Assembly: GCF_028641065.1 (NCBI RefSeq)
Contig: NC_073379.1
Span: forward strand, 21,948,001 to 22,012,000
From: Leucoraja erinacea
Lineage: Eukaryota
Direction: 5' to 3'
DNA length: 64,000 nucleotides
In this document: positions 1,342 through 46,035 of the stretch, piece after piece
Numbering within the stretch: the first letter of the stretch is position 1
How the letters are laid out: every line of letters begins with the position of its first letter
The notes under the pieces: model-generated
What the model was told of the DNA's origin: nothing
Databases searched by the model: none
What the model saw: only the letters and a program-made list of their open reading frames with translations
Translations under genes and position numbers: made by a program

Positions 1342-1390
1342 ATGCTGTTCATTCTGCTTTGCACCATTGCCCTGCCTATCTCCGCTGATC
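1342..1390 (+). CDS. siglec15-like: Gene A exon 1: signal peptide MLFILLCTIALPISAD
   Basis: ATG followed by 16 hydrophobic codons, then a phase-1 donor C|GTAAGT; homologous to 45987-46035; joins V1 in frame. Confidence 0.8.
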
Positions 1391-1849
1391 GTAAGTTTGC
1401 TTGGGTATGGATATGGTTTAATTGTTGTTAATAAGAACATTTTATTGTTAGAGTTCAGAACGTTTGGGAAAGAGCAAATAAAATGGGCCAGAGGCAAATT
1501 GGAGGCTGGGAAGCAACGTGCAATTGTGGACTCTACAATGCAACACTGAGCAAATGGTCCTCGAGGGGCTGAGAGCAGGTTAATCCTCGGGCTGAAAGTT
1601 CTGTGGGATGGTTGAATAGACTGGGCTTGTGTATTCTTCAGGAGAGAAGGGGGTACTTCATCAAGCAGTTTAAATTGATTTTTACTTGAAAGGGTCAAAT
1701 GAGTGAAAGATTTCCTCTAGACGAGAGTTGAACCGAGGGAGCTGGGAGTACCAAGGAAAAGCGAGACTTGGTGTGCAAGTCTGAGCTATTCTGAAGGTTA
1801 CGGCACAGGTAGATAATATGGTTAGCTGGGGCACAGAATAGAAGAAAAA

Positions 1850-6612: not shown

Positions 6613-6996
6613 GCTGCAGTATCAATGGTTGGTCCATAGAGACATCGGACGAGGTGATGGGAAGGAAGGGGAAGCTCGTGGTTCTGTACTGCAAGTTCGC
6701 TCACCCTCACCGTGAATACAAAGGCAACATCAACATCATCTGGAACGAGAAGGAGCCCAAGAAGACCCTTTTCAAATACAAAAATTATCTATCGAGCGGC
6801 AAGTATAAAAATGAGATCGTGGCTAATGTAGGAGCTCGCTACAGACCAATGGGGGACCCTCGGAAGAACGATGCTTCCATAATCATTAATCAGCTGGGAA
6901 CGACGGATACAAACAAGACCCTCTACTGTCGTGTTGAGCTCACGGGGCAAGCAGGGGCAAAGTTTGACTGCCCACATGGGCGAATCACAGCATCAG
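6613..6996 (+). CDS. siglec15-like: Gene A exon V1: Siglec-15-like V-set domain with the essential Arg (YCRVE)
   Basis: Acceptor ttcacag| and donor G|GTGAGG, phase 1-1. WSIETSDEV..VVLYCKFAHPHREYKGNINIIW..RYRPMGDPRKNDASI..YCRVELTG..HG parallels Siglec-15 WSMQVPPEV..VLPCTFTHPHRHYDGPLTAIW..RFRLLGNPRRNDLSL..FCRVEFAG..HG (recalled sequence). Confidence 0.9.
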
Positions 6997-8190: not shown

Positions 8191-9407
8191 CTTAGATGTG
8201 TGCATCAGGCACTGTAAAAGAGAAAATAAGCAAAGTGAAGAATGTAGTATGACAGCTACAGTGAAAGTGCTACTAAAGAGTAGTGCAAGCGTTTAACGTG
8301 GTAGATTGGAAGATCGCGTAATTCAACCCTAGCATTTGTGAGGTCCATTCAAGAATCTAACAAAAGGTAAGAAGTTGTTCTTCCATCTGGTGGTACCTAC
8401 TTTCAAGCTTTTGTATCTTCTGGGTGTGAGAATGTCAGGGTATTAGTTGTCCTTGATAATGTGGTTGCTTTTTCGAGGCAGCATTAAGTGTAGAATGGTG
8501 TAACAGAGAATCAAAATTGACCCTGGCAGATTGGAGAGACAGCATTTGTTCAGGCAGTGTTAGTGAACAGGAAGGGGTAGTCCCTGGTTTTTAAAACAAT
8601 GCTTAGACTATTACGTGAAATGGGAGAAGGAGTCAGAACACAGATGCTCGAACCAACTCTCATCCATAAAATCATGGCTAATTCTGGACCTTGTTCATTG
8701 ACTGAGAGATCCCCCAGACAGTGATCTCCATGAGACCCAGACAAACTGTGGACCTTTGGTTTGAACTTACTCAACTACGTTTTACCCACAGCTTCTGCAT
8801 AATGTGGATTGTTGATTGTAATCATGTATAGTCTTTTCGTTGACTGGTTAGCATGCAATAAAAGCTTTTCACTGTACCTTGGTACAGGTGACAATAAACT
8901 AAACTAGTAAGATTAAACTAGAACTTACCAGTTTGAAGTTTGATCTGTATTTTATGAGGAGTTACGATGAGGGATTACGTGAAGAAGCCCGCTCAGGGCG
9001 CAGGCGTGGCATGCTTCCAAGCAGCGGTGTGGAATCACAGACAGACACACGTATTTGAAGTAACATAGTGAAGAATAAAGAGACATCAATTATCAGTTTG
9101 ATCCATGTAATGAGGGTGGGAGCGGAGGGCACGTAATCCCTCATTGTAACTCCTCATAAAATACAGATCAAACTTCAAACTGGTAAGTTCTCGTTTAATC
9201 TTACTATTTTACTTCGGAGTCACGTGAGTGACTTCGTGAAGATTTCAAAGCTCTGTGATTTCAAACCGTGTAACAGTTTTACTCACTCACTGCCGAAAGC
9301 TCTTGAGGAAGGAAGTGTTATTGTAATCAACCAATGAATCTGTTTTCAAAACAAAACGGTATTTATTAACAATAACAAAAAAACAAATAGCTCCCCCGGG
9401 CTTTAAA

Positions 9408-10178
9408 TTAAATATTTGCAGTTTCTAATATTCTTGCTGCAAATAAATCAGGCTTCACCAACGGCTTGTCATAGAACGTCCGGAATGTGGATTTCCTCGA
9501 CCATCCTGCTTTGTTTAGGATAAGGTCAATAGGCACATTCATTCTTGCTGCCGATGATGTGGATGCTGCCCTGGTGGAATGAGATTTATATACATTAATG
9601 TCTATCCCAGCAGCTTCCAATACCTGTTTTAACCATCTTGAAATGGTCTGGCTCGTTACCCTGCCATGTGGTTTTTTGTGGCTGACCCATAAGACTCTTT
9701 CACTTCCTCGGATATTATGGGTTGTGTCAATATAAATTTTTATGTGGGTCACCACACACAATCGTGGCTCTGGTGGGTAGGCCCGGAATACCACTAGCGT
9801 GTTGGATGTTCCTGGCCTGCTTTGTTTTATCAGACCTTGTATAGTGAAGGTTACCTGGTCTGACGTTGTTTCCATGCTGTCCAGTCGAAGTTTATGCAAT
9901 GACTGGACCCTCTGTGCAGATACTAGAGCCATAAGCATGAGCGTTTTTAATGTCAATTGCTCAAGGCTGAGGGATCTTGCTGGTGGTCTGTCCCGAAGGT
10001 ATGTGAGCACAATACTGATGTCCCAAATTTGAGTATATCTAGGCTTGGGGGGCTTAATGTTATATATGCCCCTCATCAGTTTGACCACCAGCGGATGGGA
10101 CCCCATGGGCTGATGTCCTGCAGGTTTGAGGTAGTTGGAGAGGGCACTACGTGCCATGTTGATGGCACTGTAGCTCAT
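9408..10178 (-). CDS. DIRS tyrosine recombinase (frame extends upstream to ~10290; N-terminus deleted)
   Basis: Catalytic motifs SAQRVQSL, HSTR, AGW, FRTFY. Confidence 0.9.
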   Translation of the reverse strand: MSYSAINMARSALSNYLKPAGHQPMGSHPLVVKLMRGIYNIKPPKPRYTQIWDISIVLTYLRDRPPARSLSLEQLTLKTLMLMALVSAQRVQSLHKLRLDSMETTSDQVTFTIQGLIKQSRPGTSNTLVVFRAYPPEPRLCVVTHIKIYIDTTHNIRGSERVLWVSHKKPHGRVTSQTISRWLKQVLEAAGIDINVYKSHSTRAASTSSAARMNVPIDLILNKAGWSRKSTFRTFYDKPLVKPDLFAARILETANI

Positions 10179-10222
10179 ATCCTCATGATGATGTAAGTAG
10201 GCCAGGAACTCGAGAACATTGG

Positions 10223-12043
10223 CTAATGTGGCTGTTTCGTAAGCAGTCCCCGTTTCTTGGCAGTACCTCTCCCATTTCTTGATGTTGGTGATTCCACCAC
10301 CATGTCATGGAGTACTGGGAACCATGGCTGTGTAGACCAGTCGGGCACCACCAAAATTCCAGATGCTGAATCCATCTGGATTTTGCGAAGTACCCGACTG
10401 ATGAGGCAGAAGGGAGGAAAGGCATAGAAAAAGAACTTTCCCCAATCCAGCGTGAATGCATCTACCGCTGCTGCCTCTGGATCTGGTTCCCACGCGACAT
10501 ACGTAGTTAATTGGTGATTCAGTCTTGATGCAAATAAATCGATATCTGGCTTCCCATATTGCTTTACAATTTTAGCAAATGCTTTAGGATTTAACATCCA
10601 TTCGATGTTGTCATTGAATTTGCGTGACCTGGTGTCCGCCACTGTATTTAGCTTACCTGGTAGATAGGTAGCTGAAAGCCAAATATGTCTTTCGACACAC
10701 CATTGCCAAATCGTATTGACCAATTTGTCGCATGATAAAGATTTTATGCCGCCCATATGGTTAATGTAAGCCACCACCGTAGTATTGTCTATTTGTAATC
10801 TAACATGCAAGTGATGCATATTGGATACATATGCTTTCAAACCATAAAAGGCGCCCAACATTTCCAAATAATTAATGCCCAGTGTAGATAGTAATGATGA
10901 TTCTAAGTTAGTCCATCTACCACCTGTGCTGGATATGGAGTTAGTTGCTCCCCAGCCTTTAGCACTGGCATCTGTTTGGAGTACTAAAGTAGCATTAGTA
11001 ATAACAATAGGACTACAATGATGCCAAATGTTTTGTATCCACCACTGTAGCTCTGATATTGCTTCAGGGGGTAAACGCATGACTCGGTCATAATGACCTT
11101 TATGTTGTTTTAGTGCCTTTACCTTTGCTCTTTGCAAATTTTGATAGTGCAAAGGTCCAAATTGGATAGCTGGAAATGCTGCTACCATTTTGCCAATTAC
11201 TGCTGCCACTTGTCGAATAGCTGGTGTTTTGTTAATCTTTAAGTTATTGCATGATTGTACTAATGCAATCATCTTTTCCCTTGGCAGGGTAATAGTCATT
11301 TGGACTGAGTTAATTGTGAAACCCAGGTAGTCCATTATCGTGGATGGATTTAACTTGGATTTATCTGGATGTAAAACGAACCCTAGAGCTTCTAGGAGCT
11401 GTTTAGTAGCTGATACTGCTGCTACAGCCAATTCCATAGTTTTCACAACTATGAGGATGTCGTCCAAATATGCCATGACTATATGATTAAGTTTCCTTAA
11501 CGTTGCCATGGCTGGTTTTAATATTTTAGTGAATAGTCTTGGGGCTGAAGTAAGCCCATTAGGCAGTGCTTTATACTGCCACAGCTCCCCCATCCAGATA
11601 AATTTAAGGTACCTGCTATAATCCTTATGTATAGGTACCAGAGAGTAAGCATCTTTGAGATCAATGCTTGCCATATAGTATCCTTCGGAAATCAGTTGTC
11701 TAGCAGTCACAAATGTTTCCATTTTGAAATGTATATACTTAACAAAATCATTCAAGGATGTTAAGTCAATGATGATGCGACATCCACCATCTTTTTTAGT
11801 TTTTGTAAATATGTTGGAAACAAATTCCAAGGGCTCATGTTTAGTTTTTTCTATGACCCCTTTGTTTATGAGTCTCACCAGTTCAGCTTGTCCCTCCTGT
11901 TGTTCTTTTTTGAAGAGAAAAAATACCCTTTCGGGCCGGTGTTGAACTGGCGGTATTTTTGAAATAAATTCAATTTTATACCCTCCAATGCTATTGAGTA
12001 TATATTTATCATTAGTGATCAATGCCCATGCTTCTTTAAACAA
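10223..12043 (-). CDS. DIRS pol: reverse transcriptase, RNase H and methyltransferase-like domain
   Basis: IDLKDAY, LPNGL, YLDD; TDAS..GWG, INYLE, IDN, ADTRSR; DLFAS and YAFPPF. Confidence 0.92.
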   Translation of the reverse strand: MFKEAWALITNDKYILNSIGGYKIEFISKIPPVQHRPERVFFLFKKEQQEGQAELVRLINKGVIEKTKHEPLEFVSNIFTKTKKDGGCRIIIDLTSLNDFVKYIHFKMETFVTARQLISEGYYMASIDLKDAYSLVPIHKDYSRYLKFIWMGELWQYKALPNGLTSAPRLFTKILKPAMATLRKLNHIVMAYLDDILIVVKTMELAVAAVSATKQLLEALGFVLHPDKSKLNPSTIMDYLGFTINSVQMTITLPREKMIALVQSCNNLKINKTPAIRQVAAVIGKMVAAFPAIQFGPLHYQNLQRAKVKALKQHKGHYDRVMRLPPEAISELQWWIQNIWHHCSPIVITNATLVLQTDASAKGWGATNSISSTGGRWTNLESSLLSTLGINYLEMLGAFYGLKAYVSNMHHLHVRLQIDNTTVVAYINHMGGIKSLSCDKLVNTIWQWCVERHIWLSATYLPGKLNTVADTRSRKFNDNIEWMLNPKAFAKIVKQYGKPDIDLFASRLNHQLTTYVAWEPDPEAAAVDAFTLDWGKFFFYAFPPFCLISRVLRKIQMDSASGILVVPDWSTQPWFPVLHDMVVESPTSRNGRGTAKKRGLLTKQPH

Positions 12044-12074
12044 GTGTAACCTTCCCCCTGTTAGTAAGGCACCC

Positions 12075-12782
12075 TTATTCTCTGTATGCTGGTAGGAACC
12101 AGATTTGACTGTTGAGACTCTTAACCTTAAGAGCCTCGCAGTTGTCTGGTGCTGTGTGCTCCTCCAGCACTTGGGCGAGCACCTTCTCCTGAAGAGGTTT
12201 GTTCGACAGGTGATTTATACTAGCCGCCATCCTCGGCTCCAAAGGTGCTCCAACCCGTGGGGTAGCGACAAAACGATCCACAACACCCAGCAGCTGTTCT
12301 TCCTGCACACCCTGCACACTCCCGATTCCTTCCACCTGCCCCTTTTCCAGACCAGCCCTGCCCTGGTCACCAATGCTAGCCTCCAGTTCTAGGTCTGAGG
12401 TTGCAAAGGGAAGTGCCGGACTCGACACTATGGAGGAGGCACCTGTCCTGTCTGCCCGAGAGCGCTGCTGTTCTCGGTAGACCATCCCCTCCAAGAGCTG
12501 CTGTATGCAACTCAGGCGGTTGTCTCTCCTCCGTTTTGGGGAGGACATTTCCCCCTCCGACGAGTTGGAGTCGACCGGCCGATTGGTTTTCCGGGTTGCT
12601 TTCCCAGCCCGCCGTGTAGGCTCTGGCGTGACTGGGACCGGCTCGGTCTCGGGAATTGTAAACCGCTCCTCGAGCGGTACTACCGCCGGTTGCTGTCCCA
12701 CTGGAATAGGCTCCTCCGGTGGAGTTAGAGCCCGGGCAGTTTTCTGAGAAAGTTTTCTGCGTTGGGACATTTTGCTCTGCAA
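12075..12782 (-). CDS. DIRS gag-like ORF1, C-terminally truncated
   Basis: First ORF inside the element; PDNCEALKVKSLNSQIW motif, then ends abruptly before pol. Confidence 0.7.
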   Translation of the reverse strand: MQSKMSQRRKLSQKTARALTPPEEPIPVGQQPAVVPLEERFTIPETEPVPVTPEPTRRAGKATRKTNRPVDSNSSEGEMSSPKRRRDNRLSCIQQLLEGMVYREQQRSRADRTGASSIVSSPALPFATSDLELEASIGDQGRAGLEKGQVEGIGSVQGVQEEQLLGVVDRFVATPRVGAPLEPRMAASINHLSNKPLQEKVLAQVLEEHTAPDNCEALKVKSLNSQIWFLPAYRE

Positions 12783-14171
12783 AAAAATTCTAACGCCAAC
12801 TCTCTCCGGTTTCCCAACGCACCGTCCACTTACCTGACGGTCCGTTTTAAAGTGCAGCTGGAGTGCCTGACTCCAGCTGCCGCCGCTGTTGCACTGCTGG
12901 GCGTAATGCCGCGCCTGCGCCCTGAGCGGGCTTCTTCACGAAGTCACTCACGTGACTCCGAAGTAAAATCTGGGATGGAAAATTCAGTAGGTTCACAAAC
13001 ATTATTGTAGGGAATTTCTTGACCTCAGTCCTGAATGTCTGACTTCTTTTTCCCTGACATGTGGTTTTTGAATCATAAGCAGGAGGAAATAAACTTTCCA
13101 CAAGTATTTGTGAAATCCATCTATTCCCCAGAGCCCTCTGTCCATTGACATCAGTCCCAGTCCCCCTATTCTTTCCACACAATCCCCCAAATTATTCCAG
13201 TCAGGTGTGTTTAATAGTCATATGCACTGGGATTAGAACAACACAATTTTTCATTGCTGCAACTTTGTAGGCACATTGATGCAACATAATAATACATTTA
13301 CAACAAACAATAATACAATATCAGTTATACATGGTAATAGCATTTGATTAACATTTGAAGTATTTAAAGCAACCTTATACAAAGTCCATAATAGTTTGGT
13401 GCAAGAGCCTGATGATGCCACAATGAACCTAAACACAACCAAACTTCAGCACTGATCTGTTATGGACAAATAACGGGATTGCTGAATCACAGTTCGGGAG
13501 GGAGATCTTCAGTGAAATCAAAACAACCTGTTAAATGGCAAGATTGTCTTCTTGAACCTGGAGGTAAAGGTTCACATTTCCTGAACCTTCTACCTGGCAG
13601 TAGCAACAAGAGGAGATCAAGCCGTGTGATACTGTTATATTGGCTGCCCTCAATATTTACTCTCATTCACTTACCAATCAAGTGACCACAACAGCCGATC
13701 ACCAGGGCAATCCTGTCCCCAACCGATCATAGATTCCTCCACATTCCCACTTCTCTGCAACATAAAAGACATTTGTTTTATTGTAACTTTTCCCAGTTCT
13801 GATCATCAACCTGACAAACATTTGTTTCTCTCCTGATTTTTTCAATGGCAATGTAGCTATCGTAATCTTGTACTTCATACTTTCATCATTGAGCCCAGCG
13901 TCTCGCACTTCACTAACCATTGCCTCAATGTGTCACATTTGTTTTAGTTAACTGTGTCTCAGAAGGAGTTTTCCACATGTTCCTTGGCATCCTTGAGCAT
14001 TGTTCTGTTTAACTATCTTATCTCTCATTTCTGTGTAGGTATTATCACTCGGTGCTTGTCTCTGTTAATCTCACACACCTTCTCCACCTCTTCATATTCC
14101 ATCTGCAATCTTCTTATAATTCGATGGAAAATGACCATGCAGTAGAACATGCAGTAGAAAATGTAGTAGAG

Positions 14172-14531
14172 GTACATCTATGGTGATCGGGAAGAGAGGA
14201 GGTGGTGCCACACTGAACTGCAACTTCAAACACTCGAGTGCAAATAGCAGGGTGATCACTATCCTCTGGATGATGGGGACTCCATGGGAAGAGTCCATTG
14301 TCTCTAATCATACCCGCTCCTACGCCACAAGTGGTCCCGGCACTGACAATGTAAATAGAGGAGGTCGATATGAGCTGGTGGGAAACCTAGACAAGGGAGA
14401 CGCCTCCATTAGAGTGAGGGGACTCATGTTGAATGACACCAACAACTATTTCTGTCATGTTTGGATCTTTGAATCCTCTAAGAAGAAAAATTATCAGGTG
14501 ACTCAGGATGAGACGAGACTACAGGTTTTGG
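14172..14531 (+). CDS. siglec15-like: Gene A exon V2: V-set domain without the Arg (FCHVW); native splice acceptor deleted, probably skipped or weakly used
   Basis: Open frame ATLNCNF..ILW..GDASIRVRGL.LNDTNNYFC and donor G|GTAAGG are intact. Comparison with B shows a 1015-bp deletion through the acceptor; only an in-frame GAG at 14169-14171 without a pyrimidine tract remains. Confidence 0.65.
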
Positions 14532-14721
14532 GTAAGGAAACAGTCAGTGTTGAGGAGTAAATGATAAAATCACATTGAACAACTGTGAGAAGAATGAGCT
14601 TTGATCTGTTTCCTCTTTGAGCATTTCACTCCATTCTCCCGCTGGGTCTCTTTCAAATCTTCACCCTTTCCTGGTTCTCCCCCTGCACCAATGAATAACA
14701 GTGACTTTTATCCATCTCTAG

Positions 14722-14950
14722 GCTTCAGCCACCATCTTGGAGCGATGGTGATAATGTATCTGGAGATACGTGTGTGTGCGGGAGTGAATAGACAGGTTGA
14801 TCATTTCAGCTGCCATTTGTTGAGTCTACTTTCTTGTGATTGGCTTCACTTTCTAGTGGTTAAACATAGATAAACATCATGTCTAATCTCCATTGCTGGT
14901 GTTGATGGGAGAATCATGGGACCTCCAGTGACATTGTTGTCAGCCTCTGG
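14722..14950 (+). pseudogene. Decayed C2+TM exon relic behind V2 (gene A intron)
   Basis: ctag|gcttcagccaccatcttggagc matches the C2 exon start. After an internal deletion it reads ISAAIC*VYFLVIGFTF*WLNI, colinear with the gene A TM; the donor GT is changed to AT. Confidence 0.8.
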
Positions 14951-16749
14951 TTCCGGTAATGGGGGAGGGGAGAAGAGAGAGTAACTCGGGTGTGAGTGAT
15001 CCTTCATTATGTTGGCTGCTTTCCCAAGGAATAAATGCAGTTGATGGGCGGGGGAACGAGGGAAAACCTTTTATTCATTCTACATGGTTAATCCTGAGCT
15101 TTCTGGTGCTTGTAATCTTAATCATCCATGCAATTCCCCCTCTGACTATTTTTTGTGACTTCCTTATAACCCGTCTAATGCAATTTGAAGAACAGGGCTC
15201 TCTGCATCATTGCAGACTCCATTGAATTCAAGAATTTTGGATGATACTTTTTCTCTCTTTTATCAGAACTAACCAGTTCTACTGAAGATAAGCAAAATGG
15301 AATATTAATCAGTTATTCTCTGAACAATTATTGCAACTTAAAATAAGTTAGCTGAAGTTGCAGAGGTTGTATAGAGGGGTGGATTGGAAATAGGAAATAT
15401 TTCTGAAAGGGTGAGTCTAGGTTTGCTGTTGATGAAATTATCTGGTTGATAAATTAAGGAAGGAAACTGGAGACAGAGAACACAAACAAAGATAGAAACA
15501 GAGCTGCAAAATGCACGTCAGCTGCAAGAAACACGCTGCAGATCAGGCAGTGTCAGTGGAGAGAGGAGAACTGAGTCAGTATTGCAGATGGATAACCTGC
15601 TGCAGAACTTCTGATACAAACAGCGAGAAAGTTACCAGAAATTGTTGCATTCAATGTTGACTCAATGGTTCAATGGGTCAACCGTGAATAGAACAATTTC
15701 TGGTGACTTGCTTGCTGTTTGTATCAGAACTGGCGAGTTCTACAGCATCTGCGATACTGACTCAGTTCTCCTGAAGAAGAATCACGACCCGAAAAGTCAC
15801 CGATTCATTCTATCCAGAGATGCTGCCAGCCCGCTGAATTACTCCAGCATTTTGTGTCTATTTTCGGTTCAATGGTTTCTTTATTATCACATGTAGCAAG
15901 TACAGTGAAATATTTTTTTGCATACAGATCAGTAAGAATATCACCGTACATAAATAGGCACAATCCCCCCGGTTAGTACATCATGTACAGAAGAACCCAC
16001 TGAGTCTGGGCAACAGTTGCCATTTTGCACCATTTTACAGTCCTCGATGCAGTGGCCACAGAGGCCCCATTGCAGCCGCCGCCTCCATTCCAGTTGTCCT
16101 GGAATGTTGACCCTCACCCTGCACAGCCCTATTCAGCCCTTCTGCCCCAGGGGTGGTGTGCGGTGGGGGGGGGGACTCCTCCCGCAGATGAGATTAGGGA
16201 GCGGAAGTTAAAAATACATTTCTTCTCATCTCCATTCTAAAGGTACGTCCTTTATCTCTGAGGCTGCACCTTGTTTTCCTAGACTCTCTCACTAGTAGAA
16301 ACATCCTCTCCACATACACTCTCTCCACGCCTTTCACTATCCGGTAAGTTTCAACGAGATTCCCCCCCATCCTTTTAAACTAAGTTGCTCCTATAACCAG
16401 CAAAACAACCTGAGCTGCTTCCTTCACAGCATGTAATGAGACCAACAAACTATTTACAGGGTTGTCAGTGCATGAGAGGCTGACCACTGAGGCAGGATTT
16501 AAAGGGAATAAAGTAGATTCAGATTATTTATATACACCAGGATACTATGGAATTGGAGAATGGAGATGGGGAAGAATTTCTTTAGCCAGAGGGCGGTGAA
16601 TCTGTGGAATTCATTGACACAGATGGTGGTGGAGGCCAAGTCATTGGGTATTTTTAAAGCGGTGATTGAGATGCTTGATTCGTAAGGACGTCAAAGATTG
16701 GTCACTATTCCAGTTGTCCTCCACCCCGCCTGATTCGGTTAACCAGGCA

Positions 16750-17670
16750 TTTTCTGGTTGGCTGCCAGTTACTAGCAGAGTTCCGCAGGGCTCGGTGCTG
16801 GGGCCGCTGCTCTTCACATTGTATATTAATGATTTGGATGAGGGGATTGAAGGCTTTGTGGCCAAGTTTGCGGATTATACAAAAATAGGTGGATGAGCAG
16901 GTAGTGCAGAGAAAGCAGGGTCTCTGCAGAAGAACTTGGATAGGTTGGGAGAGTGGGCAGAGAAGTGGCAGATGGAAAGGTGTGGAAAAGTGTGGAGTCA
17001 TGTATTTTGGTAATAGGATTAAAGGCGTTGGTTACTTTCTACATGGGGAGAGAATCCAGAAATCGGAGGTGCAAGGTGACTTGAGAATGCTGGTGCAGGA
17101 TTCACAAAAAGTTAATCTGCAAGTTGAATCAGTTGTAAAGAAAGCAAACGCAATGCTAGCATTTATTTCGAGAGGGTTTATATGCAAAAGTAGGGATGTA
17201 ATGCTGAGAATCTTTCAGGCGCTGGTCAGGCCACATTTGGAATATTGTGAGCAATTTTAGGCACCATATCTGAGGAAGGATGTGCTGGCTCTGGAGAGGG
17301 TCCAGAGGAGGTTCACAAGAATGATCCCAGGAATGAGTAGGATAACATCAGATGAATATTTGACGGCACTGGGCCTATGTTTGCTGCAGTTTAGAAGAAT
17401 GAGGGAGGACCTCATTGAAACAGACAGAATAGTGAAAGGTTTGGATGTGGAGAGGATGCTTCCACTAGTGGGAGAGTCGAAGACGAGAGGTTTTAGCCTC
17501 AGAATTAAAGGACGTTCTTTTAGGAAGGAGATGAGGATGATTTTTTTTGGTAGGAGGGTGGTGAATCTATGGAATTCATTGCCACAGATGGCTGTGGAGG
17601 CAAAGTCAGTGGATATATTTAAGGCAGAGATAAGTAGATTCCTGATTAGTGCAGATGTCAGAGGTAATGA
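16750..17670 (+). mobile_element. CR1 LINE RT fragment, degenerate (paralogous copy 57025-57940)
   Basis: VPQGSVLGPLLF..INDLD..KFAD.TKIGG; LVRPHLEYC; LERVQRRFTRMIPG; frameshifted. Confidence 0.9.
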
Positions 17671-17991
17671 GAAGTGCTTAGGGTGCAGAACCTAAGACCC
17701 GCCCCCCCCACCCACCTAATTCAGTTAACCGCGCCTTTAGTCACCCTCCATCCTCCTCTCCGGATCCTGGTCTTCAAGGTCAAGGTTCCATCTTGTCCAG
17801 ACTGAAGCTGAGATGTCTTTACTTGAGATTGGCCCTTATTAGAATAGTGCAGGTCAGGAACAGGTGGATCAGAGTGGAATGGGATGGAGAATCCAAGTCA
17901 CAAGTATGGATGAACTATTGATAAAGACTGTGTGGTTATTGTATTCAATTACTAAATCATATTCACACTTTAAAACTCTTCTCTCTGCAAG

Positions 17992-18354
17992 TTGATAATG
18001 ACAGAGCATCCATGGTGATTGGGAGGAAGGGTGCGACTGCCACACTGCCCTGCTCCTTCAGTCCCTCGAACAGGAATCCCAGCTCCATCACCATCAGCTG
18101 GATGAAGAGGAATCCACCAAAATGGTCTGTTGTCTTTCGTGACACTTCTCCCCGCCCAGCAGCAAATCACATTCCTGAAAATGTAAATAAAGGAAATCGA
18201 TTTGAGCTGGTGGGAAATCTGGAGCAGGGAGACGCCTCCATCAGAGTGAAGGGACTCAAACTGAATGACGCCAGTGATTACTCCTGTCACGTTTATGTCA
18301 GGAATTCAACGTTGACGACTGTGACTCAGGATGAGATGAAACTGCAGGTTGTGG
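17992..18354 (+). CDS. siglec15-like: Gene A exon V3a: V-set domain (YSCHV)
   Basis: Acceptor ctcttctctctgcAAG| and donor G|GTAAGG; 363 nt, phase 1-1; ATLPCSF..ISW..GDASIRVKGLKLNDASDYSC. Confidence 0.85.
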
Positions 18355-18994
18355 GTAAGGAAACGTATGTTATGCTGTAAACGATAATATCATATTGAAC
18401 AACCTTAGGAGGAATGAGCTCCCACTGACAGTGTAGACCAGCACAGGAACAGGCCCTTTGGCCCGCAATGTCTGTACCGGACATGATGCTACGTTAATCT
18501 CGTCTACCTGCAGGTGATACATTTCTTCCATTACCTGCATTTCAAAAAGTCTCTAAAACTCCACTATCGTAGCTGCCTCCACCACCCCTAACAGTATTTT
18601 CCTGGCACCCACCACCCTCTGTGTAAACAATAACTTCCCCCACATATCTCCTTTCATCTTTTCCCATCTGTCCTTGTCACAATGCTGTCTATTCGTTGAC
18701 ATTTCCGCCAGAGGCAAAAGGTTCTGACTCTCTCTCCTATCCATGTCTTTCATATTTTTATAAACTTTCAACAGTCCAGAGAAACAGTTCAAGTATGTCC
18801 GACCTTTTCTTATAACTAATGCCCGCTAATCCAGGCAGCAATCTGCTAAACCTCTTCTGAACCCTTTCCAAAGTCTCCTCATCCTTCCTGTAATGGGTGA
18901 AAACTGCACATAAAACTGAATGCAATAATCCCAGTGTCTTAACTAAAGTTGTATAGAGCTACAACATGACTTCCTGACTCTTGTATTCAGTAGA

Positions 18995-19170
18995 TAGACA
19001 CTAAAAGCTGGAGTAACTCACCGGGACATGTAGCATCTCTGGAGAGAAGGAATGGATGATGTTTTGGGTCGAGTATCATCTTCTCGACCTGAAACGTGAC
19101 CCATCCTTTCTCTCCAGAGATGCTGCCTGTCCCGCCGAGTTACTCCAGCTTTTTGTGTCCATCTTCGGTT
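18995..19170. repeat. Palindromic ~170-bp interspersed repeat (other copies near 20980, 35615, 36105, 54660, 59305)
   Basis: gacac..aaaagctggagtaactca..gcatctctggag is followed by its reverse complement ctccagagatgctg..gagttactccagctttttgtgtc. Confidence 0.75.
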
Positions 19171-19536
19171 TTAACCAGCATCTGCAGTTCCTTCCTACAC
19201 ATCTTGTATTCAGTACCTTGACCAATGAAAGCAAGAATACTGTACACGTTTTTAACGTGTTGCCATTTTCAGGGAGTTATGGAATTGGATCCCAATATTT
19301 TTCTGTACATCAGTGGTATTAAGGGTCTTGCCCTTGTATATTTTCCACTTGCATTCAATATCCCAAAGTCAACACTTCACACATGTTCGGATCAAATTCC
19401 ATCTGCCATTTCTCTGCCTATATCTGTATTAGATTAAAATTTGTAGTATCTTTCGACAGTTCTATGTTCATCTGTCTTCCTCATGATACTCTTGCATTTT
19501 CAATAAGCAACACTACAGCCCATGTGTGGGTTTGAT

Positions 19537-19656
19537 ATTTGAGCTGCCACTTATGTGGACTGCACTCTTACGATTGGCTTCACTTTCTCATGTTTGATCA
19601 GAGGTGAACGCCACTGTCTCATCTCCAATGTTGGTGTTGACGGGAGTCTTGTGGCA
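19537..19656 (+). pseudogene. Decayed TM exon relic behind V3a
   Basis: Reads I*AATYVDCTLTIGFTFSCLIR G|GTGAAC, codon-colinear with IRAAIYAVYFLIIGLTFCWLKR G|GTGAAC of the gene A TM. Confidence 0.8.
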
Positions 19657-19975
19657 AGCTATGTCAAGTTATTGCCCTAAGACCCCCCCCCCCCTTCCCA
19701 CCTAATTCAGTTAACCGCGCCTTTAGTCACGCTCCATCCTCCTCTCCGGTTCCTGGTCTTCAAGGTCAAGGTTCCATCTTGTCCAGACTGAAGCTGAGAT
19801 GTCTTTACTTGAGATTGGCCCTTATTAGAATAGTGCAGGTCAGGAACAGGTGGATCAGAGTGGAATGGGATGGAGAATCCAAGTCACATGTATGGATGAA
19901 CTATTGATAAAGACTGTGTGGTTATTGTATTCAATTACTAAATCATATTCACTTTAAAACTCTTCTCTCTGCAAG

Positions 19976-20338
19976 GTGATAATGACAGAGCATCCATGGT
20001 GATTGGGAGGAAGGGTGCGACTGCCACACTGCCCTGCTCCTTCAGTCCCTCGAACAGGAATCCCAGCTCCATCACCATCAGCTGGATGAAGGGGAATCCA
20101 CCAAAATGGTCTGTTGTCTTTCGTGACACTTCTCCCCGCCCAGCAGCAAATCACATTCCTGAAAATGTCAATATAGAAAATCGATATGAGCTGGTGGGAA
20201 ATCTGGAGCAGGGAGACGCCTCCATCAGAGTGAAGGGACTCAAACTGAATGACACCAGTGATTACTCCTGTCACGTTTATGTCAGGAATTCAACATTGAC
20301 GACTGTGACTCAAGATGAGATGAAACTGCAGGTTGTGG
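19976..20338 (+). CDS. siglec15-like: Gene A exon V3b: tandem duplicate of V3a
   Basis: Near-identical to V3a at an offset of 1984 bp; same splice sites; open frame. Confidence 0.85.
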
Positions 20339-22151
20339 GTAAGGAAACGTATGTTATGCTGTAAACGATAATATCATATTGAACAACCTTAGGAGGAATG
20401 AGCTCCCACTGACAGTGTAGACCAGCACAGGAACAGGCCCTTTGGCCCGCAATGTCTGTACCGAACATGATGCTACGTTAATCTCGTCTACCTGCAGGTG
20501 ATACATTTCTTCCATTACCTGCATTTCAAAAAGTCTCTAAAACTCCACTATCGTAGCTGCCTCCACCTCCCCTAACAGTATTTTCCTGGCACCCACCACC
20601 CTCTGTGTAAACAATAACTTTCCCCACATATCTCCTTTCATCTTTTCCCATGTGCCCTTGTCACAATGACGTCTATTCGTAGACATTTCCGCCGTAGGCA
20701 AAAGGTTCTGACTCTCTCTCCTATCCATGTCTTTCATATTTTTATAAACTTTCAACAGTCCAGAGAAACAGTTCAAGTATGTCCGACCTTTTCTTATAAC
20801 TATTACCCTCTAATCCAGGCAGCATTCTGCTAAACCTCTTCTGAACCCTTTCCAAAGTCTCCTCATCCTTCCTGTAATGGGTGAAAACTGCACATAAAAC
20901 TGAATGCAATAATCCCAGTGTCTTAACTAAAGTTGTATAGAGCTACAACATGACTTCCTGACTCTTGTATTCAGTAAATAGACACTAAAAGCTGGAGTAA
21001 CTCACCGGGACAGGTAGCATCTCTGGAGAGAAGGAATGGATGATGTTTCGGGTCAAGTATCTTCTTCTTGACCTGAAACATGACACATCCTTTCTCTCCA
21101 GAGATGCTGCCTGTCCCGCTGAGTTACTCCAGCTTTTTGTGTCCATCTTCGGTTTTAACCAGCATCTGCAGTTCCTTCCTACACATCTTGTATTCAGTAC
21201 CTTGACCAATGAAAGCAAGAAAACTGTAGACGTTTTTAATGTGTTGCCATTTTCAGGGAGTTATGGAATTGGATCCCAATATTTTTCTGTACATCAGTGG
21301 TATTAAGGGTCTTGCCCTTGTATATTTTCCACTTGCATTCAACCTCCCAAAGACAACACTTCACGTATGTTTGGATCAAACTCCATCTGCCATTTCTCTG
21401 CCTATATCTGTATTAGATTAATATTTGTAGTATCTTTCGACAGTTCTACGTTCATCTGCCTTCCTCATGATACTCTTGCATTTTCAAAGGCGCCCAAAAA
21501 TAAAATGTATTATTATTATTAGAACCATTATGTTCTGCACAGATATTGTGGATCTTTGTAACACAGACCATGTCACAGACACAGGGACTGGAGATCGGCC
21601 CAATGCATTGTAGGTTCCATTCCTTGCCCTGGGCTTCCCTTGCTCAGCACTGCCCCTAGTGGTTTGAAAACAGTGCTGATTCCAGCCAAGATACATGGAG
21701 CTCCCTGTGGCAGGATCAGAGATTCAGAACCACATTCACCAGCGGAACCTACAGTCACTGTGTCTGTGACATGGTCCGTGTTACAAAGATCCACAGTCGG
21801 CCCTGGGGGTATCATCCGTCTCTTTCATTCACATCGACTCCGGGATCCTGTATGTTCTCTCATTGAATATTACATAGAAATGTACAGCACAGGACCAGTC
21901 CGTTTGGCCCGCAATATCTGTGCAGAATATAATGGTTCTGTAAGTTAAACTAATATCATCTGCCGACACATGATCCATATCCCTCCATATCCCTGTAGAT
22001 CCATGTGCTTCTCAAAGGCACCGTCATATCTGCAAATATTTCACTGCAGTCTCCTAGATGTGTCCTTCCAATCCCCATTCAGATGGACTCTATCTGCACA
22101 CACCAACAGTGATTAATTCAATGAATTTAATACATTTCTTCATTCTCCTAG

Positions 22152-22523
22152 TCCCAGCCACCATCCTGGAGCTGTTCGTTGTGAGCGACAATGGAGCTGG
22201 AGAACGCACCCTCGTGTGCAGGGCTGAAGGGAAGCCCCCTGCAAACATCACATGGATCGGCCCAGGGAACAGTGCACTGCCCGTGAACATTAGTGAGATG
22301 ATAGTCACACATGATCCAGAGAAACTACTGACTGTAGGAGAGCTGCTTCACCCCAGGCTGCCAGGGAAATACACGTGTGTGGCTGTGAATGAACACCAGA
22401 TGGACACACGTGAGATTCGCCTTTTCGAGGATGGACGAAGTGATGAAGCGTTCGCCATTCGGGCTGCCATTTATGCCGTCTATTTTCTTATAATTGGCCT
22501 CACATTCTGCTGGTTGAAGAGAG
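22152..22523 (+). CDS. siglec15-like: Gene A exon C2-set + transmembrane (TM with Arg: AFAIRAAIYAVYFLIIGLTFCWLKR)
   Basis: Acceptor ttctccTAG|. LVCRAEGKPPANITWIGP..GKYTCVAVNEH resembles Siglec-15 C2 (LCTAEGEPPPALAWSGP..GRYTCTAANSL). Probable donor AG|GTGAAC; read-through would stop at 22624. Confidence 0.85.
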
Positions 22524-25500
22524 GTGAACGTCTCCATCTCAGTTCCATTGCCAGTGTCAACAGGAGGGATGCTGCACCTCCAGTGACAGTGTCAGGTTCT
22601 TTTGTTGTGAATCAGGCAGTGTAACTTCAGAGATAAACAATGCTACATTCCCGCAGCTATGACCGTGTGTCTGTGGGGTACATGCAGCCGTCCTCACATC
22701 AGTCTGACTCAGTGGCCCCTCCCTCAGTCGTGTATCCGATACTTTTGCTACTGCATTGCTGCTGATTCCTGCATCCACATAGAACTCAAATTTCACATGG
22801 CTCTTAGCTGTCTTCCTGCATCCTAATCCATGGCTTAATCTCTACATTATCTGACAGTGGCCTTAGCAGCTTTGAATCGTTTCATCAACTTCTTTGCTAA
22901 TTCTTTCCCCAAGGCAGAGCAAGAATAGCTTTTCCCTGATCCTCATTTCCCACCCACTAGTCTCTGCATTCAGTGGATCAACCTTTATAGCTTCTGTTAT
23001 CATCAGTGCTGGTACACCAACAGACACATCTTCCACCTGCCTACACTTTCAGCATCCTGAGGGGACCATTCCCTTTGCGACTCCATCATCTGCTCTTCCA
23101 TTCCATTCAACCATTTACTCGGAACAGTGCATGGTGTAGCTTTCCAGGCTAGACTGTGCAATCAACAATATCGGTGAGCTCACTTTCTCTGTCTGTGTCA
23201 AAGCTGGTCAGCTGTGTTGTAGATAATCCATCTGCATTATGAACTTGTTTTCCTCTCTCTACGGGCACGGCCTGATCTGTGGCCATCTCCTGTAGCTCTG
23301 GCTTGCTTTTGCAGTTTCTACATGCTCTCTTTCTAAATGCCCAGATAGCTTTGTCAATCATTTATTACTATGGAAACCAGGCCTTACCCTATGTCATTCC
23401 TTTTTCACTGTCCCTCTCTCATTATCTCACTCTTTCTGCGCCAACAATCTTTTTTATTTTCTCAGCTATTCAATCAGAAGCATGAACTCTTTCTTTCTGC
23501 ACAGATGCCGCCTGACCTGTTGAGTATCCTCTGCACTCTGGAGAAACATTCCCTTTTCCTTGCGGATCACAGGTGTCCCCTGCATTATGGAGTGTTACGT
23601 GTAAGCTGAAACAACATCATATTTTTTTGGCACTAATTCCAAGAGTGAACATTTTATTCTTCATCTCATATTTTTCACTGGTGATTTGTGAATTCTGCAA
23701 GGGAGAATTTCCATTACTGGAACAGCCGGAATATGGGCTTTACCCAAATTGGACTGGTGGTTGGGTTGAAGGATTGGGCACGTCTTGTAACATGAGATGA
23801 GATCTCCTGGTAAAGAGTAATGACTACATTGAAGAATCTGGAACCCAGTTCACTTGTGTCTGAAGCCCGTGTGCTAAACTTTAATTAAGGCATTTACAAT
23901 GGTGTGATGCAGTTGGTTAAAGTAGTTTCAAAATGATAGAAAAAATGCCTACAGTAATGTTGTGAAGTTTATTTAAAAGAGGATTGGGAGATTGTAAGAC
24001 TGAAGTAAACATCTTAAAAAATTATGAGGACAGGGTTGATGGAGAAAATTGGTAAATATAAAACAGATGAAAGGAGCTTCTGCAAGTAGATAAAAGGAAC
24101 AGTCTCCAAAGCAAACAATGGATGAAAGCACCAAAAGTACTGCAGAGACGCTGTCTGACGATGCAAAGATAGGTGGGTTAGCAAGTGATGAGGACACGAT
24201 GGGCCGGCACAGACATATAGATGGTTAAGGGAGTGGGGAAAAAATCAGCTGAATTAGTATGATGGGGGGGAATGTACCCCGTAATGTTTCTTGTGCAATA
24301 AAAACCAGCATTCCATTTGTCTTTACAACTGCTTACAATACCTGCACGCAAGTCTCGTGTTTCACGTGTACGTACCCAATGTTAGGGGAAAATGAAACGG
24401 CAAGTTATTATTTGATTGGTATGTGACTGCAATCCTTTTCTTAACTGTCTTCCACGTATCTTAACACCATCACCCTCATTCTACGGCCCACTGGTTCCTA
24501 TTAGATTTCATTCCCCCAATATCAGTGCTATTTTGCATACCTACCTAATTTTTGCAAACCTACCTGTGGTATTTGATTAAAGATCTTCTGAACATGCAGA
24601 TACACTGCACCCACTCACATTTTCCTACCAATTACATTCTTGGAAAAAAACTCCCAGCACAGCTGTCAACCATTGAATAAATAAAAATGCTTGCAGTTCT
24701 GATTTCCCCAGTACAGGAAGTGTGGGAAAGCTCTTTGGAGAGGGTGCAGAAAAGGTTTACCATGATTAGAAAGTATGAGCTATGAGGAGAGGCTGGACAT
24801 ACTTGGATTGTTTTCTCTGGAGAGTCGGAGATTGAGGGAAAATCTGATAGAAGTATAAAAAAACTATGAGGCAGAGATTAGGTAGACAGTCAAAACCTTT
24901 TCCCCAGGTAGAAATTACTAAGGCTAGAGGGTATAGTTTTGATACGAGGGGCAGGTTTTTTTTGACATGGGGTGATGGGGCCTGGAATGCCCTGACAGGT
25001 TTAGTGGAATCAGATACAATAGGGCATCTAAGAGGCAATTAGATAGACACATGGATATGCAGGGAAGGAGGGATGTGGATCACATGTAGGCAGAAGAGGT
25101 TAGTTTACCAGCCATCAAATTTGGTAGGGACATGATGGGCTGAAGGGCCTGTTCCTGTGCTGTACTGTTCTATGTTCAGAAAAATACAAATTGATTTTAT
25201 CTAATCCTTTGAAACTTTCAAAATGTGCTGTTATCACATGTATAGATTCCAGCAAAATAAATGCTAATTGTGTGAGGCTAACTGGTGTGTAGTTTGTTTA
25301 TTTCTCTCAAACATCATTTGTTGCATTTGACACTTGCCAACCTTCAGAAAACATTGCAGAAGATGTGAATTTGGGGCCATTACGTCCAGTGCATTTTGCG
25401 GTGACGGGAAAGTGGCAGTGGAAAGGGAGACGTGAGTGTGAAGGGGATGAGTGCACCTGGGTGCAGGGGCAAAGTGGTCTCTTGTCAAGGCAGAAATGGG

Positions 25501-33990: not shown

Positions 33991-34559
33991 CACACCCAGC
34001 AACCCAGGAAATTTGTTGGATTTTTTTGAAGAAGATGGGTTTATGGATCCACGGATTTCCCAGGGTCCACACACAAACTCACCCAACAACCTGTGTATCT
34101 TTGGGTGCAGTTTGACCTGGTTTCTTCCCATATCCCAGGGTATCACAGGTTAGGATTGGACTCTGGTCTCTGGAGCTGTTCAAAGTTTGTTCTACTCATG
34201 CAACATTAATTTGTCCCTCTAATAGGTGAGTGGTAAAAATGTAGATGTGGAGGTGAGGTGTTGGAGTTGATGCAGATGTGGGCAGATTAAAATGAGTCCC
34301 ACAGTTTTTTGTCTCCATTTTACTGATCCACTGTGAAATCTATTCAAAATATCCCTCTGGGAGTTCTGTGAATTCTTGCACCTTTTAGCTCAGGGACTCC
34401 AGTCACCCACAGACAGGAGACAACTGGAAGACAGTTGACTGGACCTTGATGCTGTTATGTGAGCAGCTACACCTTCTGTGGGACTTCTGGGACCTGGTTC
34501 CAATCTACAGTTTGTTTGTTGGGTGTAAATTTTGCAGCATAGGTTGGAGATCTGAACCA

Positions 34560-34974
34560 GAGGGTGACACCCTCATTGCATCAGCCAGTTCCACTCAGAT
34601 TCAACAAGGATGGAGACTGGATGACTGAACTGCAGTGTGTCAAAATGGACTTTGCCGTTTGATGCTGGCTGACAATTCTTGCAAAGTCTCTGGAGCCCTT
34701 TTACACTCTGTGTTAACTGCACAACTCAGAAAACGGCAGGAAGCAGCAAGGAGTCTTGGTCCCACCGAACCTAAAGGATTTGAAGGCTCAATAAGAGAAG
34801 TGAAAGTTTTTGATTTGCCTTTGCACTGCCTGTCTCCACTGATCGTACAAATATTTTAATACAGAGCAGCAGTTGGTTTTCTGGCTGCTTCACTGTGAGT
34901 GAAACATATATCTATGAGATAGACTGGGCTGTCCACGGCAATGGAGCAAAATCAGTCTTTTGATGCTATACTTA
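34560..34974 (+). pseudogene. Orphan promoter + degenerate leader exon of a third family member
   Basis: Aligns with 45733-46165. ..GCC TTT GCA CTG CCT GTC TCC ACT GAT C|GTACAA (ends 34844) has no ATG and an upstream in-frame TGA. Homology resumes at 37441-37485 after a transposon. No V exon seen before the gene B leader. Confidence 0.75.
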
Positions 34975-35923
34975 AACCGCTTTTTCATGGGGCGACTTGA
35001 CGCAAGAGTTAACCAAAGTTGAACATCGTGGGAACCTCTTGCGATAACCGTATGGCATTCGTGGACCACCGTGGCGCTAACGGCAGGTATTCGTGTAACT
35101 TAGTGACTCGGGAGAAAATTCAAACAAGCTTGAATTTCTCCAAGAGTGACTTGTACACTTGTGGTTGAACATTGCAACATTATGCGGACGTAGTTTATAT
35201 TGCAACATTATGTGCATTATCCGTACTGACTCTTACATGTACCGTGGGAACTGCTGCGAACGGTGAACCCGGAAGCTGGACAGAGGGGACAGAAGGTGAG
35301 TAAAAATTGTCTTCTGTGGGATTGAATTAAAAAAATAAAGATTTGAATCCGCATATGGCCATCAACTTAGTCATGAGTTATGTTAATGTGATTCAAGAAA
35401 ATAACTATAATCTTTAAAAGGGACTTTACTGAAAGGTCCCGCATTTTTATGGTCCGTGAGAAATTTTCCACATGTACTTCTTTGAGAGATACAGCTCGGA
35501 GTCCTCGCCGACCAGCGATCGATGCCTTTCCGAAGCAGGGTCCGGAACGCTACCAATCAATGTTCTCCAGATACCCGTGTAAAGGAGTGAACTGCACATG
35601 CTGGTTTAAAACGAAGACAGACACAAAAAGCTGGAGTAACTCAGCGAGTCAAGCAGCATCTCTGGAGAAAAATAGGTGATGTTTCGGGACGAGACACATC
35701 TTCAGACTCAATTCCGATTAGGATGTCTGAAGAAGGGTTCCGATTCGAATCGCCACCTATTCTTTTTCTCCAGAGATGCTGCCTGACCCGCTAACTTACT
35801 CCAGCTTTTTATGTTTTTCTTCCCAGATCTGACTTACCTGCTGAGTTACACCAACATTTTGTGTCCGTGTTCACTATGAACATTGAATTATTTAATTTTA
35901 GGTAACTTACACTCTCTCTCTCT

Positions 35924-39590: not shown

Positions 39591-40790
39591 GGTTTGGACT
39601 TTCAGAAAGCATTTGATAAGGTCCCACATAGGAGATTATTGGGCAAAATTAGGGCACATGGTATTGGGGATAGAGTGCTGACATGGATAGAGAAGTGGTT
39701 GGCAGACAGGAAACAAAGAGTAGGGATTAACGGGTCCCTTTCAGAATGCAAGGCAGTGACTAATGGGGTACCGCAAGGCTCGTTGCTGGGACCGCAGCTA
39801 TTTACAATATACAGCAATGATTTGGATGAAGGGAATCAAAGTAACATTAGCAAATTTGCAGGTGACACAAAGCTGGGTGGCTGTATGAACTGTGAGGAGG
39901 ATGCTATGAGAATGCAGGGTGACTTGGACAGGTTGGGGGAGTGGGGAGATGCATGGCAGAAGAAGTTTAATGCGGATGCATGTGAGGTTATCCACTTTGG
40001 TAGCAAAAACAGGAAGGCAGATTACTATCTAAATGGCATCAAGTTGGGAAAAGGGGCAGTACAACGGGATCTGGGGGTCCATGAACATCAGTCTATGAAA
40101 GTAAGAATGCAGGTACAGCAGGCAGTGAAGAAAGCGAATGGCATGTTGGCCTTTATAACAAGAGGAATCGAATATAGGAGCAAAGAGGTCCTTCTGCAGT
40201 TGTACAGAGCCCTAGTGAGACCATACCTGGAGTATTATGTGCAGTTTTGGTCCCCTAATCTGAGGAATTACATTCTTGCTATTGAGGGAGTGCAACGTAG
40301 GTTGACAAGGTTAATTCCCGGTCTGGCGGGACTGTCATATGCTGAGAGAATGGAGCGGCTGGGCTTGTACACTCTGGAGTTTAGAAGGATGAGAGTGGAT
40401 CTCATTGAAACATATAAGATTGTTAAGGGTTTGGACACGCTAGAGGCAGGAAACATGGTCCCGATGTTGGGGGAGTCCAGAACCAGTGGCCACAGTTTAA
40501 GATTAAGGAGTAAGCCATTTAGAACGGAGACGAGGAAACACTTTTTCTCACAGGGAGTGGTGACTCTGTGGAATTCTCTGCCTCAGGGGGCGGTGGAGGT
40601 AGGTTCTCTGGATGCTTTCAAGAGAGAGCTAGATAGGGTTTAAAAATAGTGGAGTCAGGGGATATGGGGAGAAGGCAGGAACGGGGTACTGATTGGGGTT
40701 GATCAGCCATGATCACATTGAATGGCGGTGATGGCTCGAAGGGCCGAATGGCCTACTCCTGCACCTATTGTCTATTGTCTATTGTCTACC
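39591..40790 (+). mobile_element. CR1 LINE, 5'-truncated, abutting the Rex1 element head-to-head
   Basis: LDFQKAFDKVPH, GVPQGS.LGP, LVRP.LEY.VQFWSP; (CTATTGT)n tail. Confidence 0.92.
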
Positions 40791-45600: not shown

Positions 45601-45986
45601 GGTTATAAACAAGGAACAATCTTGCTTCTTACTTCCTGGTCAACTTTCTGAGAATTCTGCAAGCTCTTTCTAATCAAGATAAAAGTGCGGTGTGGACTTG
45701 AAATATTGCTGGCGTACCACCGACAGCAGCCAGAGGGTGAAGCCCTTGTTGCTGCTGTCAGTTCCACTCAGATTCTGCTGGACAAGGACTGTTTGATTGA
45801 AATGCAAAGTGTCAAAATTGACTGCTCCATTTGAAGCTGTATGACAATTCTTGCAAAGTCTCTTGCGCCCTTTTACACTCTATGTTAAATGTAAAATTCA
45901 GAAAACTACAGAAAACTGCAGGAGTCTCGGTTCTACTCGTCCAGTGGATAGACTTACGGCATTTGAAAGCTCAACGAGAGAAGAAA
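45601..45986 (+). promoter_or_regulatory. Putative proximal promoter/5'UTR of gene B with ETS (ACTTCCTGG 45631-45639) and GAS (TTCTGAGAA 45646-45654)
   Basis: Conserved with the gene A upstream block and, more distally, with the orphan at 34560. Confidence 0.5.
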
Positions 45987-46035
45987 ATGCTGTTCATTTT
46001 GATTTGTGCCTTTGCACTGCCTGTCACCGCTAATC
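45987..46035 (+). CDS. siglec15-like: Gene B exon 1: signal peptide MLFILICAFALPVTAN
   Basis: ATG, hydrophobic core, phase-1 donor C|GTAAGT; paralogous to 1342-1390. Confidence 0.8.

Follow-up and report, generated by a model that had tools for sequence, protein, structure and literature searches.

Relics of C2/transmembrane exons between the V exons of Siglec-15-like genes in a skate point to duplication of a V-C2-transmembrane block

A 64-kb stretch of Leucoraja erinacea DNA (contig NC_073379.1, positions 21,948,001 to 22,012,000; hereafter the window, with position 1 as its first letter) was compared with itself and found to carry two tandem Siglec-15-like paralogues, genes A and B, both on the + strand. 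Each gene has several exons for V-set immunoglobulin (Ig) domains and one last exon for a C2 domain and a transmembrane (TM) anchor. The introns behind V2 and V3 contain damaged copies of such a C2+TM exon (Table 1). Judged from their sequence, these relics are very probably vestigial copies of the gene's own C2+TM exon, in part with its short tail, that arose by duplication of a module holding both this exon and a V exon.

Results and Discussion

Identification of the C2+TM relics

The homology claimed in an earlier note on this DNA was significant when the region 22100-22700, which spans the functional C2+TM exon of gene A, was compared with the window by BLASTN at word size 7, with E values from 5e-21 to 4e-14. 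The four relic matches were 59841-59985 (71.7%, E 5e-21), 14802-14937 (71%, E 3e-16), 55570-55705 (69.6%, E 1e-14) and 19530-19646 (70%, E 4e-14). No others were found in the 64 kb, and all four were on the same strand, each closely following a V exon. The 5' end of the gene A exon also matched 14689-14788 (E 0.006) and 55457-55560, and in a restricted search the end of the intron together with the C2 start was recovered as 55381-55560 against 61843-62051 (E 1.5e-8).

When the alignments were scored against 500 dinucleotide shuffles, z was 30-37 for the TM block and 9.7 (gene A) and 16.1 (gene B) for the 5' block of C2; the observed scores of both blocks were reached by none of the shuffles. 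The same test gave no relation between the relics and gene B's own TM (z about 0) and no C2/TM relic behind V1 in either gene (z = 1.5).

The TM stretch was ungapped in all four relics relative to the live exon and is therefore codon-colinear with it, as had been claimed earlier for the relic behind V3. The relics carry IGFTF, the conserved end of the TM in this family, and were matched by the Rhinoraja longicauda protein P0006 in tblastn (E 2e-4 to 3e-6). The V2-type and V3-type relics were 75-77% identical to each other and 70-72% identical to the live exon.

Lesions of the relics

The V2 relic retains the end of the intron, an acceptor-like AG and about 70 nucleotides (nt) of the C2 start. 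The C2 core that should follow, about 223 nt, is replaced by about 9 nt, which also shifts the frame. After this deletion the relic is ungapped through the TM codons and for about 100 nt beyond, and its homology to the V3 relic extends to 55725 in gene B. In the frame of the live exon, stops were found at 14821 and 14854 in gene A and at 55589, 55622 and 55625 in gene B. The internally deleted C2+TM relic with two stops and a dead donor described in the earlier note was thus recovered in gene A, and gene B differs from that description in having three stops. The donor reads ATAAAC in both genes where the real exon has GTGAAC, with GT changed to AT at 14870.

The weight of this dead donor may be lower than first thought, because the A-type exon may read through to the stop codon at 22622-22624. 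Read in this way, the gene A exon (22152-22624) has a 34-codon tail ending in TAA. In the RefSeq models P0006 and P0022, from two species, the A-type exon continues past GTGAAC into a short tail, and the inhibitory relatives P0008 and P0053 splice at this very spot.

Behind V3, only the TM and tail part is left; C2 and the acceptor are wholly gone, and no C2 remnant was detectable there in the shuffle test (z about 0). The single stop of this relic, at 19540 in gene A and 59851 in gene B, is exactly at the Arg codon of gene A, and the donor letters GTGAAC are intact in both genes. No stop, deletion or splice-site change was common to the V2-type and V3-type relics.

Colinear units and flanking introns

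Three colinear units on the same strand were identified in gene B: U2 (54554-55725), U3 (58093-60003) and U4 (from 60770 to 62339 and beyond). Each consists of an upstream intron segment, a V exon, a V-to-C2 intron and a C2/TM exon or its relic. Such colinearity is the signature of tandem duplication, at the DNA level, of a multi-exon block. The upstream intron segment that V2, V3 and V4 had been said to share was confirmed by matches of 79.7% (54554-54622 vs 60823-60890) and 78.5% (54569-54633 vs 58162-58225) and by the match of 58093-58752 to 60770-61413. Homologous pieces of the V-to-C2 introns were also found (Table 1), and the 953 nt between the V3-to-relic intron piece and the TM relic were repeat-derived. 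The homology of the units ends at about the stop codon of gene A, 22622-22624.

The gaps between units contain transposons, and the spacing from unit 3 to unit 4 consists of repeats only. No leader-exon or promoter relic was found near units 2-4, although the leaders of genes A and B and of an orphan third copy were easily found elsewhere in the window. Tandem duplication within the gene is favoured because the units are colinear and lack leader relics.

Relatives and phylogeny of the V domains

Relatives were collected by searching the exons singly, not as a joined protein, and by a HMMER scan with V3; in the ESM Atlas, V3 gave generic V-set clusters only. The exon-encoded proteins were 75-92% identical to those of two other skates. 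In Amblyraja radiata, one RefSeq protein (P0002) has the layout V1-V2-V3-V4-C2, with junctions exactly at the AG/GT borders found here, and a second (P0001) has V3-V3-C2 as in gene A. Rhinoraja longicauda proteins P0006 and P0153 have V4-C2-TM with an Arg-type anchor. Outside the skates the architecture has one unit, leader-V1-V-C2-TM, in Mobula (P0005, P0003), Heptranchias (P0008) and Callorhinchus (P0013); the partial models P0020 and P0022 from Rhincodon and Scyliorhinus show a stalk V, C2 and TM. RefSeq calls several of these relatives 'sialic acid-binding Ig-like lectin 15'.

A maximum likelihood tree of 34 V domains split them into V1-type and stalk-type domains with support of 100/100. 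The stalk-type V domains of batoids grouped at 90/96, and within this group skate V2, V3 and V4 formed one clade (83/80) made up of three well-supported sub-clades, each with an A. radiata orthologue. Because V2, V3 and V4 form one skate clade with such orthologues in its sub-clades, the copying can be placed in the skate lineage, later than the split from manta-type rays and earlier than the divergence of these skates.

P0155 of Callorhinchus milii carries three V1-type domains and then a single stalk-type V. In the chimaera, V domains have therefore become more numerous independently, by copying of V1.

Read depth and transcripts

Two DNA runs with other species labels, X10 and X3, were compared by 200-nt bins, with reads placed at 90% likeness. 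Both carry the relics at about 99% identity, which is too close for a sister-species comparison. In both runs the depth of bins 55400-55599 and 59800-59999 equalled that of the adjoining single-copy V exons, and true transposon bins of the same introns were 100 to 10,000 times higher. The possibility that the relics are a repeat found genome-wide, considered in the earlier note, is therefore contradicted at these two bins and left partly standing at bin 55600-55799, which was raised 15-30 times over single-copy depth. The 3' half of the V2 relic falls in this bin, together with the GA-rich stretch behind it. The piece 55600-55830 (= 14832-15062) may represent a small repeat, or else an alternative 3' end still in use.

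X24, an oligo-dT run, is the sole certain RNA run; X20, with another species label, is RNA by guess only. At 90% likeness, intron placements were swamped by transposon reads and the junction table held repeat joints only. X20 covers the exons and not the unique intron bins, with zero depth over 55400-55599 and 59800-59999. In its record 9, a 1145-nt contig, the end of a V exon (= 55302) abuts the start of V3 (= 58304), that is, a V-to-V splice without the relic. The relics are skipped in RefSeq model P0002 and in this contig, which is probable RNA; a few X24 and X20 reads lie on 55600-55799, with none just beyond.

Proposed history and alternative explanations

In the history that we propose, the ancestral cartilaginous-fish gene would have had the layout leader-V1-V-[C2-TM]. 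A block of roughly 1.6-2 kb would have undergone two rounds of intragenic tandem duplication in the skate lineage. This block would begin some 190 nt ahead of the second V exon and end some 100 nt beyond the TM codons, near the stop of the A-type tail, and its duplication would give V1-[V2-C2TM]-[V3-C2TM]-[V4-C2TM]. Since the V exons are all symmetrical (phase 1), skipping of the two inner C2/TM exons would leave an in-frame V1-V2-V3-V4-C2-TM receptor. The skipped copies would then have decayed independently, which is well supported by the absence of any common lesion: behind V2 the C2 core was lost, with a frameshift, stops and the change of GT to AT, and behind V3 the entire C2 and the acceptor, with a stop at the Arg codon. 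Transposons would have swollen the introns. The earlier note had proposed a triplicated V-C2-TM module whose internal exons were inactivated; the triplication is supported by the colinear units, the outgroups and the skate clade, whereas inactivation after duplication is what we infer from the state of the relics. The order of events and the number of rounds likewise belong to the proposal.

The inner exons may have been skipped from the start, possibly for want of a poly(A) site in the copied block. If the A-type exon is a terminal coding exon (C2-TM-short tail-stop), inner copies with neither such a site nor a donor in use could not be defined as exons and would have been born silent, which we regard as possible and rather doubtful. 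One duplication would in that case have given an in-frame receptor with one more V at once, without a deleterious multi-TM intermediate.

Several observations weigh against the proposed history. The outgroups were compared at the protein level only. Support for the skate V2/V3/V4 clade is moderate and does not fix the order within it, and a simple head-to-tail junction does not account for some 970 nt of non-repeat DNA that separate units 2 and 3. The DNA depth of bin 55600-55799 is raised and a few RNA reads fall on it. X24 is almost without reads on the gene, and the X20 contig, from a run only guessed to be RNA, stems from a paralogous gene or from another, related species.

One alternative is that a first duplication gave V-relic-V-C2TM and that the V exon was then copied together with its already dead relic, so that only one intact inner exon ever existed. 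The greater likeness of the relics to each other than of either to the live exon agrees with this, as do a small insertion and a common tail motif that both relics share and gene A lacks. However, the relics have no stop, deletion or splice-site lesion in common, the acceptor and C2 start of the V2 relic are absent from the V3 relic, V2 and V3 are not a pair among the V exons, and the live exon may simply evolve faster or have been converted. We consider copying of a dead relic improbable.

It is less probable still that the V2 relic is in use as an alternative last exon, giving V1-V2 plus 50 residues as a truncated, possibly secreted or decoy, product. The acceptor at 14722/55490 keeps its pyrimidine tract, and the frame that it sets is open for 50 codons in both genes, to TAA at 14871 / 55639-55641, with AATAAA at 15030/55798. 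The reads on 55600-55799 would fit such use, and the relic with the 500 nt behind it is 98-99.8% identical between genes A and B. Nevertheless, RNA depth was zero on 55400-55599, the bin that holds the acceptor; the bin with RNA reads has excess DNA depth, so that these reads may originate at other loci; the listing contained no junction read; and the high identity of A and B is patchy along the whole tract.

Fusion of three tandem one-V genes, each complete with leader and 3' end, by read-through transcription and loss of the inner gene ends appears very unlikely. The locus is indeed a tandem cluster of Siglec-15-like genes, and relic homology stops near the termination codon of an exon that is possibly terminal. 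Against this, units 2-4 have no leader-exon or promoter relic nearby although other leaders were easily found, the spacing of units 3 and 4 is repeats only, and the outgroups already have V1 and one stalk V within one gene. Chance similarity, or an interspersed repeat resembling a TM exon, for which only the single bin of raised DNA depth speaks, can be practically dismissed in view of the shuffle scores, the same strand and order of all five copies behind V exons with homologous flanking introns, the lack of any other copy in the 64 kb, single-copy depth over the other two bins and protein-level matches from another species' TM and tail. Tandem duplication of the gene's own V-C2-TM block thus accounts best for the relics.

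Organization of the locus

Exon limits were derived from open reading frames, flanking AG/GT dinucleotides and matches to proteins (Table 1). All V exons and both C2+TM exons are flanked by AG/GT and have lengths divisible by 3, and skipping of any one of them would therefore keep the frame. In Pfam, the four V exons matched V-set and the last exon Ig_2, Ig_3 or C2-set. From V1 up to 22445/62263, genes A and B share 94-98% identity. The membrane anchors beyond this point are unrelated, Arg-bearing in gene A and uncharged in gene B.

Table 1. Exons, relics and homologous intron segments of genes A and B, in window positions
Feature	Position	Strand	Remarks
Gene A leader	1342-1392	+	
Gene A V1	6613-6996	+	
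Gene A V2	14172-14531	+	
Gene A V2 relic of C2+TM exon	14722-14950	+	From BLASTN, shuffles and frame comparison
Gene A V3a	17992-18354	+	Counterpart of gene B V3
Gene A V3a TM-and-tail relic	19530-19656	+	Truncated by junction of A's V3 tandem duplication
Gene A V3b	19976-20338	+	Counterpart of gene B V3
Gene A functional C2+TM exon	22152-22523	+	Relic template; C2 then Arg-bearing TM; possible donor after 22523
Gene B leader	45987-46037	+	
Gene B V1	50427-50807	+	
Unit 2 upstream intron segment	54554-54633	+	Homologous to 58162-58225 and 60823-60890
Gene B V2	54933-55301	+	369 nt; AG/GT flanks; phase 1-1; gene A counterpart 14172-14531
End of V2-to-relic intron	55381-55489	+	Homologous to end of true V4-to-C2 intron, 61843-61970
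Gene B V2 relic of C2+TM exon	55490-55718	+	98.3% identical to gene A's
Unit 3 upstream intron segment	58093-58302	+	Contiguous with V3; homologous to 60770-60957
Gene B V3	58303-58665	+	363 nt
Piece of V3-to-relic intron	58750-58887	+	Homologous to V4-to-C2 intron, 61705-61852
Gene B V3 TM-and-tail relic	59841-60003	+	No C2 remnant upstream
Unit 4 upstream intron segment	60770-60957	+	
Gene B V4	60958-61320	+	363 nt; no gene A counterpart
Gene B functional C2+TM exon	61971-62339	+	93% identical to gene A's up to 62263

About 1015 nt of gene B are missing from gene A (13929-14175 vs 53930-54944), among them the unit-2 upstream segment, the acceptor and pyrimidine tract of V2 and its first codons. 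The V2 of gene A has an in-frame AG at 14170-14171 in purine-rich surroundings, and its inclusion in gene A mRNA may therefore be poor.

The V3 unit is present twice in gene A, at 17691-19503 and 19676-21487 (97% identical), and V4 is absent. The junction piece 21488-21590 includes 47 nt of the V4-to-C2 intron in inverted orientation (21547-21593 = 61615-61569, minus strand), which hints that V4 of gene A was replaced by a V3 copy in a complex event. A DIRS-like retroelement (9408-12782, minus strand) is found in the V1-V2 intron of gene A only. It has open reading frames for a 606-residue protein with a reverse-transcriptase domain (E 3e-20), a 256-residue tyrosine recombinase (E 1e-8) and, upstream, a 235-residue product; a 96% inverted repeat lies beside it (8900-8981 / 9130-9211).

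A tract of about 600 nt is 99.7% identical between B and A (55643-56242 vs 14875-15474), against 92-97% for the V2 exon and adjoining introns. Identity varies in patches over the entire duplicated tract, as would be expected from short gene conversions that occurred repeatedly.

Behind the C2+TM exon of gene B, 63099-63170 encodes 24 residues that are 100% identical to the C-terminal end of A. radiata model P0002. This model leaves C2 in mid-domain and splices into the piece matching 63099-63170, which is either a downstream exon common to B-type genes or a shared mis-prediction.

Between the two genes, an orphan leader-exon-like piece was found at 34557-34975 (leader-like part 34817-34846), 76% like the leader region of gene B (45730-46166), and a 1-kb stretch at 39597-40788 was 77% like the gene B upstream region 48652-49886. 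No Ig exons follow the orphan piece, and tblastn found no further Ig exons between genes A and B (22.6-50.4 kb). The orphan piece is probably the remains of the 5' end of a third paralogue. Rfam gave no match in the entire window.

Relation to Siglec-15 and other receptors

Siglec-15 has a V-set domain with the sialic-acid-binding Arg R143, a C2-set domain and a TM Lys that pairs with DAP10/12, and is conserved from fish to mammals (PMC7226832). The best PDB match of V1 was the Siglec-15 structure 7zoz_A, with E values of 5.8e-17 (gene A) and 3e-12 (gene B). CRVE of V1 aligns with CRVE of 7zoz, including what would be the conserved sialic-acid-binding Arg; V2-V4 have His or Tyr at this position. 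The C2 domain also matches that of Siglec-15, and the V-C2-TM block resembles the body of Siglec-15.

The genes differ from Siglec-15 in several ways. Where Siglec-15 has one V and one C2, four V-set exons and one C2 are found here and two V and C2 in the outgroups, so that Arg-less V domains, one in outgroups and three in skates, stand between the lectin V and C2. In place of the TM Lys, which relatives P0005 and P0013 have, gene A has Arg and the TM of gene B is uncharged. C2 and TM are also in one exon here. The genes may work like Siglec-15-type lectin receptors. Since they have neither the V+C2 architecture nor the TM Lys of Siglec-15 proper, they are better classed in a Siglec-15-like family of cartilaginous fish.

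In the KIR2DL1-type pseudoexon, an Ig-domain exon is kept in the gene and left out of the mRNA (10.1101/135426). Like it, the skate relics are intronic, vestigial exons of an immune receptor's own domain set that record the history of the gene. The KIR pseudoexon, however, is an Ig-only exon and marks the loss of a domain, whereas the skate relics are membrane-anchor, possibly terminal, exons and mark domain gain.

Extra domains have been gained by duplication in other Ig-superfamily genes. Siglec-12 (Siglec-XII) has two V-set domains, the extra one from duplication of a single V exon, and we know of no report of TM-exon relics in it; in the skate genes V was copied twice together with the C2/TM exon. 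The IgD genes of teleosts contain tandem repeats of the C-delta 2-3-4 exon block, all copies of which are in the mRNA. There too a tandem duplication of a multi-exon block lengthens the protein, but part of each inner skate block must be skipped and has decayed. Our literature search turned up no work on Siglec-15-like genes with several V exons in skates or sharks, nor any on relics of TM exons.

Exon duplication is the assumed route by which multi-domain immune receptors grow, and intermediates are rarely preserved. The process is textbook knowledge and vestigial exons are known, for example from KIR, so the present case is a good illustration and not a new principle. What it offers is a duplicated unit that can be read directly: a V exon together with a C2/membrane-anchor exon that splicing had to ignore. 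The relics give evidence that the ancestral anchor was Arg-bearing, of the activating type, and the neutral anchor of gene B would therefore be secondary. They also provide a testable idea of how such duplications may escape a harmful intermediate, and record a dated, skate-specific lengthening of the stalk in a so far undescribed family of Siglec-15-like paired receptors of cartilaginous fish.

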